Below, piece by piece: positions 52,523 through 62,866 of a stretch of DNA of 64,000 bases. Position 1 is the first letter of the stretch; each line of letters opens with the position of its first letter. Location: the NCBI GenBank assembly GCA_965235115.1, contig OZ249439.1:7440001-7504000 (forward strand), given 5' to 3'. The translations under genes were made by a program, and so were the position numbers. The notes beneath the pieces are model-generated. The model was given only the letters and a program-made list of their open reading frames with translations. It made no database searches and was not told the DNA's origin. The stretch is from Laetmonice hystrix (lineage: Eukaryota).

Positions 52523-52890
52523 TTTGTCTGAAACCCAAGAAACATGATAATTAAATCAATGCAGTGGTTATTTTGCCGGAAGACGGCAGGATTCTCGAAT
52601 GGCCTATTCCTGGCCCGCATGTGCACTTATTGCAGGTTTGGACAGTTTAGAAATGTTTCCTTCATACGAGTAACTCGGTCATAGTCACCAGTATACATGT
52701 AGTCAAGTGATACGATAGTCCTGCCAGCAAGCGTTCAACGTACATGTCAAGGGGGCGTGGGGTGGGGTGGGGTGGGTGGGTGGGTGGGGGGGGGCGGGGT
52801 ACACGTCGACGTCAGTCTGGGGCGGTGGGGGGGGGGGGGGCACTCACGCCAGTCCCGGGGGTCAGTCGGGGGGGGGGGGGGGGGCAGGTC

Positions 52891-52970
52891 AGGGGCCGTT
52901 CAAAAATTACGTAACACTATTTTGGGCCAAATCTGACACCCCCACCCCCTGTATGTAACGCTGCAGCCCC
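52891..52970 (+). mobile_element. Single terminus of a PIF/Harbinger-like MITE amid G/C tracts
   Basis: aggggccgttcaaaaattacgtaacac resembles GGGGCC-type TIRs; the partner TIR was not found. Confidence 0.35.
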
Positions 52971-53559
52971 CCCCACCCCCCCCCCCCCACCCCAGCGTGG
53001 TATATCGCCCATGATAACTTAAACCCCACGAAATTTGGTGGAAAGTAAAGATCCATGGCCCTGACCTTATCCCTAACCCCTAACCCCAGTCCCTACAGTA
53101 CACCTCCCAAAAACATATCCCTATCCCTATCCTTGACCTTAACCCTAACCACCTGCCCAAAGGCAAAGGCAAAGCCAAGGCCAAACATTTCGTGGAAAGT
53201 TATCATGGGGGAAGAACCCCCAGCGTACGTTCAGTTTGGGGGTCAGTCCAGAAGGGGATCAGTTCAGTTCAGGGGGCTTAGTCGGGGGGCAGTTGGGGGG
53301 GGGGGGGCATGACATTATTATGGGCCTTGGCGGGGTTCAGCGCAGATTGCCACTGCCAGCTTGCCTGCTTGAGACTGAGTTTGACTGACTGAGTCAGCGT
53401 GTCGCCTAGCCCTAGGCCTAACGTTAGCCCTAGCCGAACGGACGAGGCTCTGTGACTAATTCGCCCTATTCTTTAGTTAAAATCCCAATATTCTTGGTAA
53501 ACAGTGCACGGTTACTCATGATCCTGACCAAGGACTAGGTCCTATCCCGAGCGGGTATG

Positions 53560-54172: not shown

Positions 54173-57100
54173 ATGGCCCTCGCCCGGCACATGGCGATTG
54201 AACGGAGGTGAGTAGATCAATCAAGTTAAAGTGGATCATCGATCATGTTAATATTTGTCAAAGTCCCAGGTAAATATAACTGGTACTTTGGCTTTATTGT
54301 GTCTCCCGGCCCATTTCATGTTTATTTATTATGATACAAAGCAAGCGGCCAAATATGAAATACAAATTAAGTGAATCAATTCAAGATGAAATGATCTCTT
54401 TTCCAGTACCCGGTAGCCTGAAATAGCAGTATATAGTGCTGTTACTGGACGAGTACCAGGGCAGTCTTTTTCAAATAGATCTGTAAATGTACCGTACGGT
54501 ACCCCGGTAGTGAGAACCTCAAATTTTTCTTGTCCTTTTCCTGTCCAGTGCTGATTTCTGGTAAGAACAGTATTATTGCAAACAGAACGTTAAGCATCAT
54601 GCAGCTAGCCAGAGTTATAATTATAGGCTCACAATTATCGGATGAGAATGATGTCACATTCTTATACAGAGCACTGGTCTATGTTAATTTAGACATTTGT
54701 TTTTTTTTATTCAAGCATTTACCTGAATGATTAGCATGACAGACAAATATATCAGACATGAGAGTGAATGCAAAAATTTGGAAAATAGTTGGAAACCTTG
54801 TTTTTGAATTAGTACTTGGGTTCATGCAAGGTCAGAAAAAATCAGATTTCGAGATTTTTTGAAAATCAGAACACTCTCATCCCTGATAATATGCATATGA
54901 TATTATATTCACCTTTAAAACTGCTTGCATTATGTAGAGTCTTAAGTTTTTCTAAACAAAATTTGTAGGTCAATGATCGTTGATTCTTAAATTGCAGGCC
55001 TGCATGAGCCTAGATATTACATTATTTGGACACATGCATGGTAATTAGATAACTTTCCTAGAATGTGAGAGTGAGTCTTTAGCTTGAAAAACTCTAAATT
55101 GTGCAGAAAAACTTTTTAAAAAAGAACAGTAAAAATGGACACCTTTTATTTCACCCTTGATCCATATATTGTTTCAAGCAAACCAAGCGTGTGTTATATG
55201 ATGAATAGAACTCCTAAGAAAATGACATAAGCCAGTTGAATGAAGATCCATTGGAAATTTCCCCATTATAAAAAGCTATTATATATATTTGACATCTCAT
55301 TAATTAGGTCTCAAAATGTAGGTTAAAAATGTTAATTATTCAGTTCATTCATCTTATTTTTTCACCATTACATTGCATTGTCATGGCAGACTGCTAGAGC
55401 TTGCTCAGGACAATGAAGATTTGGATGCAGACATAACCAAGCTAGAGGATACATTCAAGCAACACAACACGTTGACATCAGATAAAGATAATCCATTGAC
55501 ACCTTTAAGGTAAATCTATGAGAAGTGACTCTTGTAATTTCCACCTTCTAGTGAAAAAATAAATCTAAGCCAATTTTTCTATTGAATAAACCTGAAAGTA
55601 ATTAGTTCTCAAATTATCAAAACGTTACTTTTAATAGATTTCTAGATAAAGCAAGTTGCAACAAAAAGAAACTTTTCTGCATTTCACATGATTCTCAGAA
55701 CAGCAGTTCTGACATGGCTAAGCCTAAAGGAGGCATGCTAGATACATTCATTACCAGAAATACATTGTGTCATTTCTGTTGTAGGAAGGAGATTGGAGGT
55801 TCAGTATGGAAGCAAGGATTACAAGGAAAACTTAAGGTTTACAGGAGTTCACAAGATGTACAGGACAATCCAAGACCTCTAAAAACAATGATACCAGTTT
55901 CAATCCTTCGAAACCCATTGACTTCTGGACAAAGGTCCAGATATGGGCTTACAAGTAAGGAGAAACCTGTAGAATCTATGAAATTTGCAGCAAATGGAAG
56001 CACACCTTCAGAAGAACGGGATCAAGGATCTAAGAAACAACCATTGAAGGGCAATACCCAAGCAGAAGGTAATGGAGATGTTTCCAGAGAAAAATCAATT
56101 AAGACTAAACCCACAGATTCCAAGGAAAGACAGGACGATGAGGGTGAAGTTTCTGTAGAGAAACGGATGCATGCATCTAGGACCACGTCTCGTAACCCAA
56201 GGATACATCAGAGATCACAGTCATTGAACAGACAGAGATCAAAATCACTAACAGATCCAGAAAAAACAAAGGTGGCAGATGATTGTGGGATTACTGAGCA
56301 AAAGCAGATTTCTTCAAACAGTCTGAGAAAGGGTAGGTCTTTCACAGGTCTTGCCTTAGGCACTTCGTCAGTGTCTGACTCCGAAGATGATCATTTATTT
56401 GATCCTAATTTTGAAAAGAAATCTTATGAAGAAAGAGTTACTGCTATGAAAGAAAAGGTACTGAAGAAAATGCTTCACAAGACAGACTTACAGAACAAAC
56501 TGAAAGACTTTAAGAAACACCCAAAAGTAAAAAAAGAAAAAGTGGATGTAACATCAGAAATACCACTGCAAACGAATAGTTCCAATGGACGGCGGAGAAC
56601 TGAAGCTCGGCATGCTTCTCTCAACAATAAATCTAATGACCAGATTGAATCAGTAAAGAGTGATAAGTCATCAACTCCTGAAGGGAAAGAAAGTAGTCCA
56701 GAGCAGTCAGAAGATCTAGAAGGCCTCCAGATCCAGGAGTGGTTGAGGGGCCTGGAACTGAAGGAAGCTAGCAGGTATACTGAGATATTACGAACTCATG
56801 GAGTCACCATGGACGGCGTGAGGAAACTCAAGGAGAAAGACCTCCAGGCCATGGGAATACATTCCTACCTTGTGCTCAACAGGCTTCTCGGTGGAATCAA
56901 AGACTTGAGGATTGCACAAGGATTACGTCGAGAAAGCAAGAGTGACACCAATAGCTACTCTAGTGGAACAAAAGACACCCTGTCCCTGCACTTTACTGAG
57001 AGCTCTGTCTCAAATAGTGAAAGGGAATGTAGTCCCTTGGATAATAAATCCAGGAAGTCAGAAACCCCAGGTGAAGAGGACTCTCAGGGAAAGCGAACAT

Positions 57101-60100
57101 TTTCAAAAACAAATTCCCCAAAGAAACCACCATGGGGCTCTGGTATTGGATCAAGATCCAACACAAAGATCAAACCAACTTCAAAACCATCATCTGAGAC
57201 GAGACCCAGAACATGTAAGCATTGTATAGAGACCATTTCATGAGTATTCAGTCTTGACCTCAAAGAGGTTTCAGGTTAGTTGTTAATTATGGCCTGTGAT
57301 GTTTGAGTCAATAATTACTGAATATGTTTTAAGTAAGCCCAAATGACTATTACAATGGGCCTACATAATAATTCAGTTCCAATGTTATTCCCTTAGGCCC
57401 GGGTTCCATGTCCAATGAAACCACCCAAAAACATCCACAAGCAGCATGGGGGAGGACTACACAGTCAGAGCCACAGGTTGGTAAATATAAGCCAGGCCTG
57501 GGCTTGACATGCACTGCTTTGTGTCTCTCAGACTTGGCAAACTTTTCTTTGTCTTGATCATGGACACTATTACTATTTTCCCATTCTTAGATATGCCATG
57601 TCCCAAAGAAAACTTTCTGTGTTTTGTTCTAGTCTTCTGAATCAAGTGAGGAGACCTTAGAAGATGAAGAGAGGACGGAAGTGAAAGTGTTGACGATTAA
57701 ATCTCGCCCACAGCCTCCAAGTCAAGAGACTAAATCTATCAGTTCTCAGCGAAGCCCACGCACTCGACTCTACCGTAGACCTGCACCCGTCCGCAAGAGC
57801 CTTGCACTCCCAGTGGCTTCATTTGATGTTCGAGATGATACCACAAGTTTATGTAAGTTAAACGGGGAGGATTACCATTAAAGTAAAATCTTTATGAAAT
57901 TGTAATTGTCTAGATACTTGGCAGATGGTCGTTATGTGGTGAAAGGAGATAAAAATGTTTGCCACTTATATATCAGTTTGATTTGATGTATTAGTAAAGT
58001 TGACATGATCATGTTATTTTAATTAGTCCTGAGATATTGCGTCAGGGATACCGAATAACGATAAGCAAATGATATCAAGCTTATGTAACCAGCCCTACTA
58101 TAAAAGTGGAGTAAGTAGTATATGAAAAGTGAAATTTTATTCAGGCTGCCTTGACATGTTCACATCTCAGAGACCTACATTATGTCTCCCAGGAGATGAA
58201 AAAAATCACATACTCACATATAAGTGACATAGTAATTTCCATTCCCAGTAGGTGGAGCAGAGGGGAATAAGTTAAAAGTTCCGGATCAGGATAAAGATAA
58301 AAGTTTACAAGGATCACCACAACAAGATGTGTCGCCACGTACTACCACAGCCCAGACAGCATTCCAGGCCATGGAATCTCAGGTGAGAACTACCTCAGGA
58401 TCCATGGCACCTGTCGACTCCCATTCAATATGCTGTGGTATTGTAATTTGATATATCTAGAGGTCACCAGGGAACAGTGGTCTATCAACATTGTGGTCTG
58501 TTTACTGTGGTCTAATTAACACAACTTGCCCATCAGCCACTTGTCCTGACACCAAGTCTGCATTAAGGATCATTCTAATCCTGACACCAACTCTCCATTA
58601 CGGATCATTCTAACCTTGTCTTAATTCTCCTTCAGATTCACATCCTACAGGAGCAGGTGGCTGTCACCGGGGACCAGGCGACTACAGACATGATCTGCCA
58701 ACTGCAGCAGCAGCTTGGACAGCTTCAGAACGCTGTGATCCAAGACCATACCACCACCAGCACCACCAGAAGCACCACTCCAGGCATCATAAAAACAACC
58801 CAGGGTAACAAACAAACTGGTCCTGGAAACCTCATCACGGCAGCATTACAAGGTAACCTCCGCCCAGTCAGCAGCAGAGTAGCACCACCACCACAACCAC
58901 CATCACCACCACCAGTACCACCACCACCGATCCCACAGGACCCACTTCAGGACCAAGATCACCATCAGACATTTCCAGGTGATTTTCTTCAAGCTAACCA
59001 TCAGTCAAAGAGATCACCGAATGGTCTATTGTTTTATCTTGTGTAAAATAATCATGAAAACGTTTTAGATGTAAAAGGGCATACCAAAACAGCTTCTGTG
59101 AGAATAGAAAGGTGACTAGAAGATAACTCCAACTTGTTTTGCCACAGCCTACACAACAACTATTGATGTGATTTGGTGGTGAGAGGGTTCTTTATTGATG
59201 AGCTAAAAGAGTGTTTACCAGGGTCCCTGTACACAAGCATATTTTGTAGTCAGAATTTAAACTTCCATTATCTAGATGAGGACTGGTCAGATCATGAGGG
59301 AAATGTTGTCTCTCCGACGAAACCCATGACCAGGCCAACGTCTGGCTCCACTGTAAGTGGAGGTCAACGGAGGTCACAGGGGTCAACTCCTTCCAAGGTC
59401 AAAGGATCCATACTCAGCCTGTCGATGAGCAAACAACAGATCCTGAAGGAAGTTCGCAAACAAACTGAAGAACACCGACGTACAGTCAGGTGAAGGAACT
59501 AATAAATCACAAAAACGTTTTGTCCATTGCTGTGACAAAGTCAGGTGACTGTTTAACAGCGTCACTCTTAACTCTGTTTAACAGCGTCACTCTTAACTCC
59601 TCTTATCTATAACTCAATAACCAGAACGTTTGGCTCTATCTTCTTGGGAAAACTTATTGTTACATGATGTTAAGAATAATGTTTGCGTCCTGTTGTAGAA
59701 ATATTCATAATCTGATTAACTTTGTTTTAGACATCTTGAGTCAGAGTTGTCACGGCTTAAACACAAAGATCCACTGAAGGCATGTGAGATTCCCGCAGAG
59801 GAGGTGATCTTTGATGAGGAAGGTGGGTGAAATATAAAGGACTTAATTTTGATCAGATACACCAGTAAATTGAAGGTTAACAGAACCATGTAGATAGCGT
59901 ACCATTATTCGTGTGCCTGATGTTTTTTCCCTTCCAGATTTAATTGGAGAGGGAGCCTTCTCCAAGGTCTTTCACGGAGTGTTTCAAGGGTCAGAGGTTG
60001 CGATTAAGAGATTAAACGTACCACTCAACTCTCAGGACAAAAACTATTTCACAGCAGAGGTACACCATTTCATACCATGTTTAAGAGTATAAGAATATGC

Positions 60101-62535
60101 AGTCACTATAAGTTCCGATTATTTACTCTTGGATAGCTAAATTTTTGCCTCAGTCACCTCCGTGTAAATGTGCCTAAATTGTTCTAGGTGAACCTACTGC
60201 GTGAATTGAGACATCCTCGAGTTGTTCTACTGATGGGCGTGTGTACCACATCACAGCGCCCCCTAATGGTTCTTGAGTACATGAACGCAGGCAGTCTCTA
60301 TGGTTATCTCCACGACAAAAACAAGTAAGGATAACCCACTGTGGAGAGGTATCCACAGCAAGCTGTGTTCAATCAGCTCATTGTTTATATCTTTCTCGTC
60401 CTTTCTTAATTTGTTGTCCGTGTCTGACGTTCGAATGATATTTAACCTACTCTTCCATCAGACCATCCCTGGATCATGCAGCCTATTATTTAGTGGCACG
60501 TGACATTGCCTTAGGCATGAACTACTTACACCGGCATCGACCAACCGTCCTTCATCTTGACCTCAAGTCGATGAATGTCCTCCTCACCAACCACCTTCAT
60601 GCCAAGATTGCAGACTTTGGTTTCTCAAAGCTCAGGTAAAAACATGCAACGGAGAACTGCAGTTTCTTGAAAGAGTGTGACTGCATTTCATCCATGTCAT
60701 GTCTTTCTACGTACGAAATAAAACACAAATTTGAATCCTGAATAAGAGCTGAGCCATTTCCGCATGAAATGTGAGTACGTCAAGCTATTGATATACCTTA
60801 AAATTTCTCTGAAACTCTTCACCAAATAATGAAATGATGGAATGTAGCCCATATTGGTATATAGCAGGATAGAAAGCTGACCATCCTGGAACATGATTTC
60901 AGTAAAAATTAATCTTTTTTCCCCATCGGATTTGACAATCAGACATGATGCAGAAGTTGTGATGTCAGAGAGAGGAGGCTTGAAGGGGACACCCTCGTGG
61001 ATGGCTCCAGAACTCCTAGACACAGGTGACATCACACCCAAGGCAGACGTGTACAGCTATAGCATCATCTTGTGGGAGATGGTGACACGCAGCCACCCGT
61101 ACCCAGGCTGTTCCATGTTCCAGGTCTGTAAAACCCACATAAACACCAGCCAGCATGTCAACTGGGACAATGTGCTTCCATTTCAGGCTTTTCTATCATG
61201 GTCCGAGATTTTGAATTGAAAGCTCTTCAGGGAATATTTTTCTAACTTTGTTCTATCTTTTACTTTTAACTTCGTCTTTAACATGCATGTGCTTGCCTTG
61301 AAGATAACTTGGCCGACATGGTGTCAAATCAGCAGTACTCTCTCACTTAGTCACCATTACTCTGAAACCCACATAGATATTGAATGTAGACTTTGTTTAG
61401 GTGTTGGAGCGTGTTCGTACCAGAAAGCGACCTACCATACCCACGGATTGCCCTGATGGACTGGTTGCACTCATCATTCAGTGCTGGGATCATCTCCCAA
61501 CAAAACGTCCAACATTTGAGGTAAGCATGCCTTTCTAGTTCTCTCCGTCATGATGAAACATGTGGTGTAAACTGTATGAGTAGAAACGTTTTCTAGTGTT
61601 AGCAAACTGGTGTTGATGCGTTGGTACATGATCTGGTATGTTGATAAAAGTAGGTTTCCAAACTTTGCTTCTAGTTTTAGAGTTCCCTGCCACAATACAC
61701 ACAATTCAAAACAGAATTACTCAAGAAATTCCGTTTTATTACTTATTAGATTATCTTGAACAAACTGGAAGAGCTCCAGTTCCCCAGGGAGTGGAAGTCT
61801 CTGTTTGCTGCAGCAGGAATACCCCAAGATGCACTTGATGACCTCGAGGCCACAAGGACCCTAATTAACATTGTCACAGAGACTGTGTCGGGAGATATCC
61901 TCGATACAAACGGTTCTGTTGTGAACCATTGTCAATCTGACACTGACCCAAGATCCAAGGAAAGAACGAAAGCGTCAAGGTCACGGGTGTCATCAGATCC
62001 AAGGTCAAACACTCCCTACCAGGACAGTGCAAGCGTCCCCCGTGGGAAAGGCAAACGGACATCTGTGAAGAGTTCCGCTGGAGATAAAAATTCCTCGGCT
62101 GCAAGGCTGCCTCCTCCGGCACCACCCCCACCAATGGCGCCCCCACCACCACCACCACCACCGTTACCACCACAACAGGTGCTGCCATCTAGCACACAGC
62201 CACCTGCGACAACCGACTTTTTGCTGGCATTGAAAGCAGGCATTCAAGATGTCAGACTGAAGCGAACTGAGAGAGACCCCGATAAGACAAACCAGCCATC
62301 CACGGGTTTCCTTATCGCAGCCTCTGAGCTGCAGCAGAGGAAGAATGAGCTGAAGCCCGTCCAACATCCACACCCGAGCTGTCTACAGGACCTGAATGGA
62401 GTCAGTAAGGGCACAATCAGTGGACTGACCGACGTCCTCAGACGGGCTGTGAATGAACGCAGGGTGGCACTCAACGAGTACAGCAGCAGTGATCAATCAT
62501 GTACAGACAGCGTCTGGTCGGTGGGCGACTGGTAA
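54173..62535 (+). CDS. Coiled-coil / SAM / TKL protein kinase with a C-terminal WASP-like GBD-polyproline-WH2-WH2-C-A module, about 1395 aa, 15 coding exons
   Basis: Exons 54173-54207, 55390-55509, 55785-57214, 57397-57476, 57633-57852, 58249-58382, 58636-58978, 59276-59489, 59731-59822, 59938-60059, 60188-60324, 60462-60635, 60943-61123, 61401-61520, 61750-62535; all GT-AG, phases consistent, 4188 nt. SAM: IQEWLRGLELKEASRYTEILRTHGVTMDGVRKLKEKDLQAMGI. Kinase: IGEGAFSKV, VAIK, FTAEV, HLDLKSMN, DFG, GTPSWMAPE, DVYSYSIILWEM, CWDHLPTKRPTF. The 5' exons are less certain than the kinase and C-terminal exons. Confidence 0.85.
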
Positions 62536-62547
62536 CTCCTGCTCACT

Positions 62548-62866
62548 CAGTAAGTGATTGGTAATCATTAATTAACACTGGTTAGTGAGTGATTGGTAAA
62601 CAGTAATAAACACTGGTTAGTGAGTGATTGGTAACCAGTAATGAACACTGGTTAGTGAGTGATCGGTAAACAGTAATGAACACTGGCCAGCGAGTGATTG
62701 GTAACCAGTACTGACCACTGGTCCGTTAAAAGTGATTGGTAACCAGTAAGGAACACTGACCAGCAAGTGATTTGTCATCAGTCATCAACACTGCTCAGTT
62801 AGTGAATGGTAACCAGTAAGGAACACTGGGCAAGTGATATCGGTACCCAGTACTGACCTCTGGTAG
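62548..62866. repeat. 35-bp degenerate tandem repeat, about 9 copies, directly after the kinase stop codon
   Basis: Unit about gagtgattggtaaccagtaatgaacactggttagt; period 35 between 62587 and 62622. Confidence 0.9.

Follow-up and report, generated by a model that had tools for sequence, protein, structure and literature searches.

The locus studied here raises the question of what a WASP-type autoinhibitory segment does when it lies directly behind a protein kinase. Autoinhibition of WASP is the textbook case of a clamp that is released by a GTPase. For the window, by which we mean the whole 64,000-nucleotide stretch of Laetmonice hystrix DNA that was analysed (contig OZ249439.1), an earlier note had proposed that the clamp helices of the WASP GTPase-binding domain (GBD) are kept, that the Cdc42-binding CRIB motif ahead of them has been replaced by a kinase domain, and that the clamp may be released by this kinase or, alternatively, fold back on it as in PAK. 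The part of the domain following the CRIB is referred to as the WAID (WASP autoinhibitory domain), a name used by Kollmar et al. 2012 (PMC3298513).

Reconstruction of the gene's 3′ half gave forward-strand exons 59726-59822, 59938-60059, 60188-60324, 60462-60635, 60943-61123, 61401-61520 and 61750-62535, all introns being GT-AG and the spliced frame remaining open up to a stop at 62533-62535; tblastn with annotated Lineus, Haliotis and Ptychodera proteins recovers these exons in the same order. Of the sequencing runs, three contain the locus and these look like genomic DNA, none being an RNA run. The overall layout is SAM domain, TKL-type kinase, WAID segment, polyproline, two WH2-like motifs, C helix and a Trp-containing end (Table 1). 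The catalytic motifs of the kinase (GxGxxS, VAIK, HLD-L-K-x-x-N, DFG and APE) are intact, and it is probably active; its best Pfam match is PK_Tyr_Ser-Thr and its closest relatives outside the family are TKL kinases. It carries HLD in place of HRD, i.e. it is a non-RD kinase, a type that usually relies on controls other than activation-loop phosphorylation. The exon encoding the end of the C-lobe stops at position 252 of the 258 in the kinase profile, and αI is completed, after a GT-AG intron (61521-61749), at the start of the last exon (61750-61776, IILNKLEEL); the WAID core, which is in frame within that exon, thus begins 10 residues after the kinase.

Table 1. Positions of the features of the kinase–WAID gene within the window
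Feature	Position	Strand	Basis
SAM domain, in large 5′ exon 55714-57240	56728-56910	+	Pfam SAM_2 E 1.4e-7, SAM_1 E 4.2e-6; same position in homologues
Conserved pre-kinase exon, RHLESELSRLKHKDP...	59726-59822	+	tblastn with P0071, P0005 and P0012
Kinase exons 59938-60059, 60188-60324, 60462-60635, 60943-61123	59938-61123	+	Pfam per exon; tblastn collinearity
Last full kinase exon, C-lobe, αH to αI	61401-61520	+	Pkinase_Tyr profile positions 214-252 of 258
Whole conserved module, L-E-x-L-x-FPxEW ... LV-T-x-T	61765-61899	+	Alignments A1 and A4; AlphaFold2
Core of the CRIB-less GBD/WAID-type module (32 residues)	61780-61875	+	Translation FPREWKSLFAAAGIPQDALDDLEATRTLINIV; profile matches to WASP/N-WASP GBDs
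Polyproline region	62104-62178	+	Read from sequence
WH2-like motif 1, DFLLALKAGIQDVRLKRT	62212-62268	+	Predicted helix 156-166; aligns with the WH2 of P0047; kept in closer relatives
WH2-like motif 2, F-x-I-x-A-S-E-L-x-x-Q-K-x-x-L-K-P	62305-62361	+	Kept family-wide; predicted helix 191-200, pLDDT ~89
C (connector) helix, candidate clamp partner	62416-62472	+	Alignment A3; predicted helix 220-240 (AlphaFold2)
Ser/Asp-rich C-terminal end, weakly acidic 'A' region with invariant Trp (W56 of A3)	62473-62532	+	Alignment A3

The translation and coordinates of the core as first quoted are exact, and the WASP core string that the earlier note had given is real, being present in 2k42_A and 1ej5_A and aligning with the family profile without gaps. 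S-L-F, A-G-I and L-x-D-x-E are, as it had claimed, common to the segment and the WASP core, with identities at 9 of 32 positions. The gapless alignment likewise places Ile at the position of WASP Y291, and this Ile is conserved across the family; the position of WASP S277 is a nearly invariant Pro. The full module has a mean column identity of 49-51% across phyla, with W and P invariant (alignments A1 and A4), and in the family alignments the WAID is conserved on a par with the kinase. The family consensus, L-E-x-L-x-F-P-P-E-W-R-x-L-F-x-x-A-G-V/I-P-x-x-A-L-E-D-x-x-S-T-R-x-I/L-I-x-L-V, forms the best-conserved block among the matches to the last exon, and AlphaFold2 predicts helices within the module at tail residues 13-21, 26-30 and 32-50 (pLDDT 82-86).

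Searches with the single sequence are close to silent. Run on the complete last exon, Pfam reported no family at E ≤ 10, phmmer with that exon against the PDB returned polyproline noise only, and BLASTP against the WASP exon of the same genome, which had been located at L006 by a whole-genome scan for the PBD family, gave nothing at E ≤ 100. Against fish WASL, BLASTP gave E 0.001 at the correct place, and the sole Pfam family touched by the window piece is PBD (PF00786; positions 26-54, 12.5 bits, E 0.19), below the gathering cut-off of 21.3 bits. As a single pairwise match, the segment is barely above chance. In protein-atlas features the tail lies nearest to WASL clusters, an observation that is a lead only.

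Comparisons at the family level give a different picture. A phmmer search with the last exon against 1.84 billion representatives found 54 matches, 23 of them at E ≤ 1e-10. Profile A1 (49 positions, 39 sequences, the segment block alone, its members picked inside the phmmer matches by a regular expression from the query's own motif, which may sharpen it slightly) had eight matches among 177,635 distinct PDB sequences: six constructs of the WASP/N-WASP GBD, the PBD of an Entamoeba PAK and a designed protein. The two strongest, 2k42_A (E 0.0052) and 1ej5_A (E 0.01), align without gaps in the register proposed in the earlier note. In hhalign, A1 matched a profile of true PBDs, made from fungal PAKs and the genome's own WASP and PAK exons and covering CRIB and post-CRIB parts, with a probability of 96% and P 3e-9 (P0047, a CRIB-bearing relative discussed below, left out; P 4.3e-9 with it included). 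The match spans 37 columns, the first of them adjoining the end of the CRIB, and the post-CRIB helices are recognised at template columns 27-64. The negative control, the same PBD profile against the C-helix profile of the family, gave 0.1% probability and P 0.56. PBD is also the commonest Pfam family in A1 members (7 of 39, best member E 0.011), and the amphioxus orthologue matches PBD positions 24-52 with E 0.009. The profile similarity to WASP/PAK GBDs on which the earlier note had staked its reading is present in both types of search.

These results bear on whether a short amphipathic helix following a kinase merely resembles the WASP GBD by chance. The empty BLASTP comparison with the genome's own WASP exon and the sub-threshold Pfam match could be taken that way, as could a wide structure search with VIA-align, which was non-discriminating for a helical unit of this small size (best Z 3.6; the WASP GBD 2k42 ranked 18th at Z 2.7 and N-WASP 8s5t 33rd at Z 2.6, among unrelated helical matches). 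Chance is, however, contradicted by the hhalign result with its clean control, by the preponderance of GBDs among the PDB profile matches and by the alignments to CRIB-bearing proteins described below, and we consider it highly improbable. On these profile comparisons, the segment is a genuine CRIB-less remnant of a GTPase-binding domain, homologous to the post-CRIB, autoinhibitory half of the WASP and PAK domains, as the earlier note had supposed.

The loss of the CRIB and its replacement by the kinase C-lobe are borne out as well. Neither a CRIB (I-S-x-P-x(2,4)-F-x-H-x-x-H-V-G) nor a Pfam PBD match turned up anywhere in the last exon. The whole-genome PBD scan recovered the WASP and PAK of this genome and gave no match in the window, and Pfam found no CRIB elsewhere in long members of the family.

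Related segments occur in CRIB-bearing, WASP-like proteins that lack a WH1 domain (WAWH-like). P0047, from the representative search, has EF-hands, a canonical CRIB (Pfam PBD E 2.5e-15), a WAID, polyproline, two WH2 motifs, a C helix and an acidic-Trp end; its relatives include P0194 and P0196, with the layout CRIB-WAID-PRD-WH2-C-A, and fish N-WASP. A further match in the representative search, P0030, was discarded as a low-complexity repeat protein. By BLASTP the window tail aligns with P0047 collinearly from the WAID to the C-terminal Trp (E 8e-12), with P0194 collinearly from the WAID to the C helix (E 3e-9), and with P0196 over the WAID alone, beginning right after the P0196 CRIB (E 2e-6). 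All three share the WAID pattern P-x-E-W-K-x-L-F/L ... A-G-I/V with the window gene, and P0047 and P0194 also share the C-helix pattern G-L-x-x-V-L-x-x-A-I-N-x-R-R; unlike the window gene, the three have a canonical CRIB immediately ahead of the matching segment, no kinase and a strongly acidic end.

The C/A profile of the family, A3, matches P0194 in hhalign with 93% probability (P 3.1e-7) and P0196 weakly (15.9%, P 0.0016), while against the PDB it reached designed coiled coils only and no WASP or WAVE C region. In the C helix the first Arg of the R-R pair is invariant, and the second Arg and the Ala are nearly so (A3). Pfam WH2 has no match on the last exon; the second WH2-like motif aligns with the WH2 LKPV motif of P0194, whose acidic D-W end aligns with the Trp-containing end. 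That end is Ser-rich and weakly acidic in the window protein and most members, and more acidic in crustaceans. The clamp-type helices and the C helix share their flavour with the CRIB-bearing proteins, and the whole tail is, by these alignments, a WASP-type module in which the place of the CRIB is now taken by the end of a kinase.

The same arrangement, in which a SAM domain and a TKL-type kinase are followed by the WAID, a linker or PRD, a WH2-like motif, the C helix and a Trp end, is seen in echinoderms (Antedon, Anneissia, Amphiura, Acanthaster, Asterias and Patiria), the hemichordate Ptychodera, three species of Branchiostoma, the nemertean Lineus, many molluscs, the brachiopod Lingula (from a truncated gene model), the acoel Symsagittifera, many malacostracan crustaceans (with a diverged motif) and, in a degenerate form, the tunicate Styela. 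Outside animals it is present in the nucleariid Parvularia, there with a canonical WH2. A family profile search found one copy in the Laetmonice hystrix genome. No vertebrate, insect or nematode protein was among the best 120 matches, which suggests that the family was lost from these groups. Every member bears an automatic or 'uncharacterized' name and the searchable literature yielded no description of a kinase–WASP fusion or of this old and so far undescribed opisthokont family.

Between WASP/N-WASP and metazoan PAK, the module is the closer to WASP/N-WASP. The module aligns with the GBDs of 1EJ5 and 2K42 (PF00786 positions ~25-59) without gaps over ~30 residues, sharing R/K-S-L-F, A-G-I/V, L-x-D-x-E, S/T-S/T-K/R and L-I-x-x-F/L-I/V, and downstream of it, as in those proteins, lie polyproline, WH2-like motifs, a putative C helix and an end that contains Trp. 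By contrast with WASP/N-WASP, the window gene has no CRIB, basic region or WH1 domain and has a kinase upstream; besides the Ile and Pro substitutions described above, the first hydrophobic position has Trp in place of Leu, and the acidic region is weak. Metazoan PAK PBD chains, including those of human PAKs, were not reached at E ≤ 10 in the A1 search of the PDB, on which basis the segment is nearer to WASP/N-WASP than to metazoan PAK.

The helices could nonetheless work as in PAK, packing on their own kinase (either in cis or, in oligomers formed through the SAM domain, in trans) to inhibit catalysis, and so regulate the kinase and not the actin tail. They are homologous to those of the PAK1 switch domain (PDB 1F3M), which has P-E-x-W-x-x-L-L ... 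I-S in its first half and likewise shares a polypeptide with a kinase. In its own first half the motif of the family (P-x-E-W-x-x-L-L/F) is closer to fungal PAK PBDs (LPKEWQxLLQEAGIS), with which it is nearly identical, than to metazoan WASP. The adjacency of the kinase and its non-RD character also fit, and an AlphaFold2 model of the kinase and tail of a crinoid orthologue has clamp helices at pLDDT 84-87, a C helix at ≤88 and a pTM of 0.68, more than the kinase portion of the chain would account for, which hints weakly at a wider confident placement. However, the order is the opposite of that in PAK, where the module is N-terminal, after the CRIB and before a kinase-inhibitory segment and a STE20-type kinase, whereas in the window gene it follows a TKL-type kinase; a PAK kinase-inhibitory segment was not recognised in the window gene; and the segment is inherited together with a WASP-type C helix also in the CRIB-bearing relatives that have no kinase. 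Taken with the missing human PAK matches, this makes a PAK-like role unlikely.

The most likely function is, by analogy, that of a WASP-like clamp acting on the C helix and released independently of GTPases, a reading to which we give a probability of about one half. It is favoured because the segment is nearer to WASP/N-WASP in the PDB, because it is inherited with the C helix whether or not a kinase is present, and because binding the C helix is, to our knowledge, the only role of the WAID in WASP. In such a mechanism the WAID helices and the amphipathic C helix ~180 residues downstream would fold into a closed bundle, as in WASP, hiding the putative Arp2/3-activating tail.

Structure predictions render the helices with confidence and add little on whether the two elements meet. 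The tail model (33-sequence alignment) has WAID helices, WH2-like helices and the C helix at an overall pTM of 0.24, too low for a confident arrangement of the whole; structure matches to it span residues 1-55 or 185-247 and never both, and Foldseek found nothing for it in the PDB. A complex prediction with the WAID and C/A pieces, made with the alignments unused, scored 0.09, a result that speaks neither for nor against contact, and correlated substitutions between WAID and C helix, viewed by eye over few independent lineages, gave no readable signal.

The segment might instead descend from a GBD without having any autoinhibitory role, and serve to dock some other partner or to cap the C-lobe of the kinase structurally. 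That the module directly abuts αI would suit a cap, and GBD helices of WASP accept foreign helices, as the PDB titles of the EspFU (2k42) and SemD (8s5t) complexes indicate. Such a role would nevertheless leave aside the strict co-occurrence of WAID and C helix in ~40 members from many phyla and the nucleariid, as well as the one known role of the module in WASP, and we regard it as rather unlikely.

If the WASP-like clamp is the correct reading, its opening would not come from docking of Cdc42 or Rac and, since the CRIB is absent, must come from another input. Candidate openers would be phosphorylation by the adjacent kinase, SH3 proteins binding the polyproline stretch, and clustering driven by the SAM domain. 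Release by the adjacent kinase, as the earlier note had suggested, is compatible with the anatomy of the predicted protein, including an end that is rich in Ser and stands in the place of the acidic end of WASP. It may even be, though we think it improbable, that the family represents an ancient subclass of WASP-family nucleation factors in which a built-in kinase replaces Rho GTPases as the operator of the clamp; the kinase might then phosphorylate either the clamp or the weakly acidic, Ser-rich end, with only a phosphorylated tail binding Arp2/3. That such a subclass has escaped notice would be explained by its loss in vertebrates, insects and nematodes.

A clamp that is kept when the CRIB is lost is not unprecedented. 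CRIB-less WAIDs are documented in ascomycete WASPs and in Entamoeba WAML (IMD-WAID-PPR-VCA), which likewise have another N-terminal module in place of WH1, and the question of what releases a clamp of this type was already raised by Kollmar et al. 2012 (PMC3298513). By contrast with these, the family described here has an N-terminal SAM domain and an apparently active TKL kinase, and is found in many invertebrates and a nucleariid, not in amoebae. What is new is the placement of the WAID directly after a kinase, in an undescribed family.

The clamp helices and their likely partner helix have been kept since before the animal–fungus split without a GTPase-binding motif and beside a probably active kinase, a natural experiment in rewiring of the WASP switch. 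For most marine invertebrate phyla, the finding indicates a candidate, as yet unstudied way of assembling branched actin that is coupled to a kinase, and the groups that carry the family include tractable ones such as sea stars, amphioxus, molluscs and amphipods.

The catalytic loop of the kinase encoded in the window reads H-L-D-L-K-S-M-N, with Leu at the position where the HRD motif has Arg; judged by this sequence, the enzyme is a non-RD kinase. Across the family, i.e. the relatives sharing its kinase, CRIB-less post-CRIB GBD helices (WAID), WH2-like motifs, C helix and terminal Trp, the His, Lys and Asn of this loop are invariant and the Asp is retained in at least 90% of aligned members.

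In the canonical WASP/N-WASP and PAK genes of Laetmonice hystrix, found by a whole-genome Pfam PBD scan, the CRIB motif and the post-CRIB helices are encoded by separate exons, and in the WASP gene the exon boundary directly precedes N-L-D-P-S-L-K. The last exon of the window gene begins 10 residues ahead of the point equivalent to that boundary.

Many database entries of the family, including P0001, P0002, P0007, P0010 and P0015, stop soon after I-L-K-K-V and continue with unrelated residues. The C helix is interrupted by an intron in the species concerned, and this intron is read through in many of the gene calls or transcripts. In the window gene the entire tail lies within one exon. The minisatellite downstream begins 12 bases past the stop codon of this kinase-WASP-like gene and presumably lies within its 3' UTR. 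Elsewhere in the window, a GC-rich stretch, in which Gly-rich open frames overlap in several phases, looks more like simple repeat than coding sequence.

Features located in the window and in the L. hystrix genome (G000)
Feature	Position	Strand	Description
GC-rich stretch	window 52744-53312
Kinase exon with the catalytic loop	window 60462-60635
Minisatellite	window 62547-62864		9 copies of a 35-bp unit, with 77% matches
Canonical WASP/N-WASP gene (L006)	G000:C13:23300676-23303747	minus
Canonical PAK gene (L004)	G000:C10:20237430-20240504	minus

Among database WASP proteins, a predicted WASL isoform X1 of the fish Nothobranchius furzeri (P0195, 466 aa) carries the basic-CRIB-GBD unit three times in tandem (around residues 30-95, 155-225 and 280-345), reflecting either an annotation artefact or an unusual duplication.

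The family's kinase-WAID-WH2-C-Trp tail is also present in P0099, a protein of 1171 aa from the nucleariid Parvularia (Nk52; Holomycota), the WH2 motif of which is canonical (NLLAEIQGYDISKLKK). Either the fusion is older than animals or it has moved between lineages.
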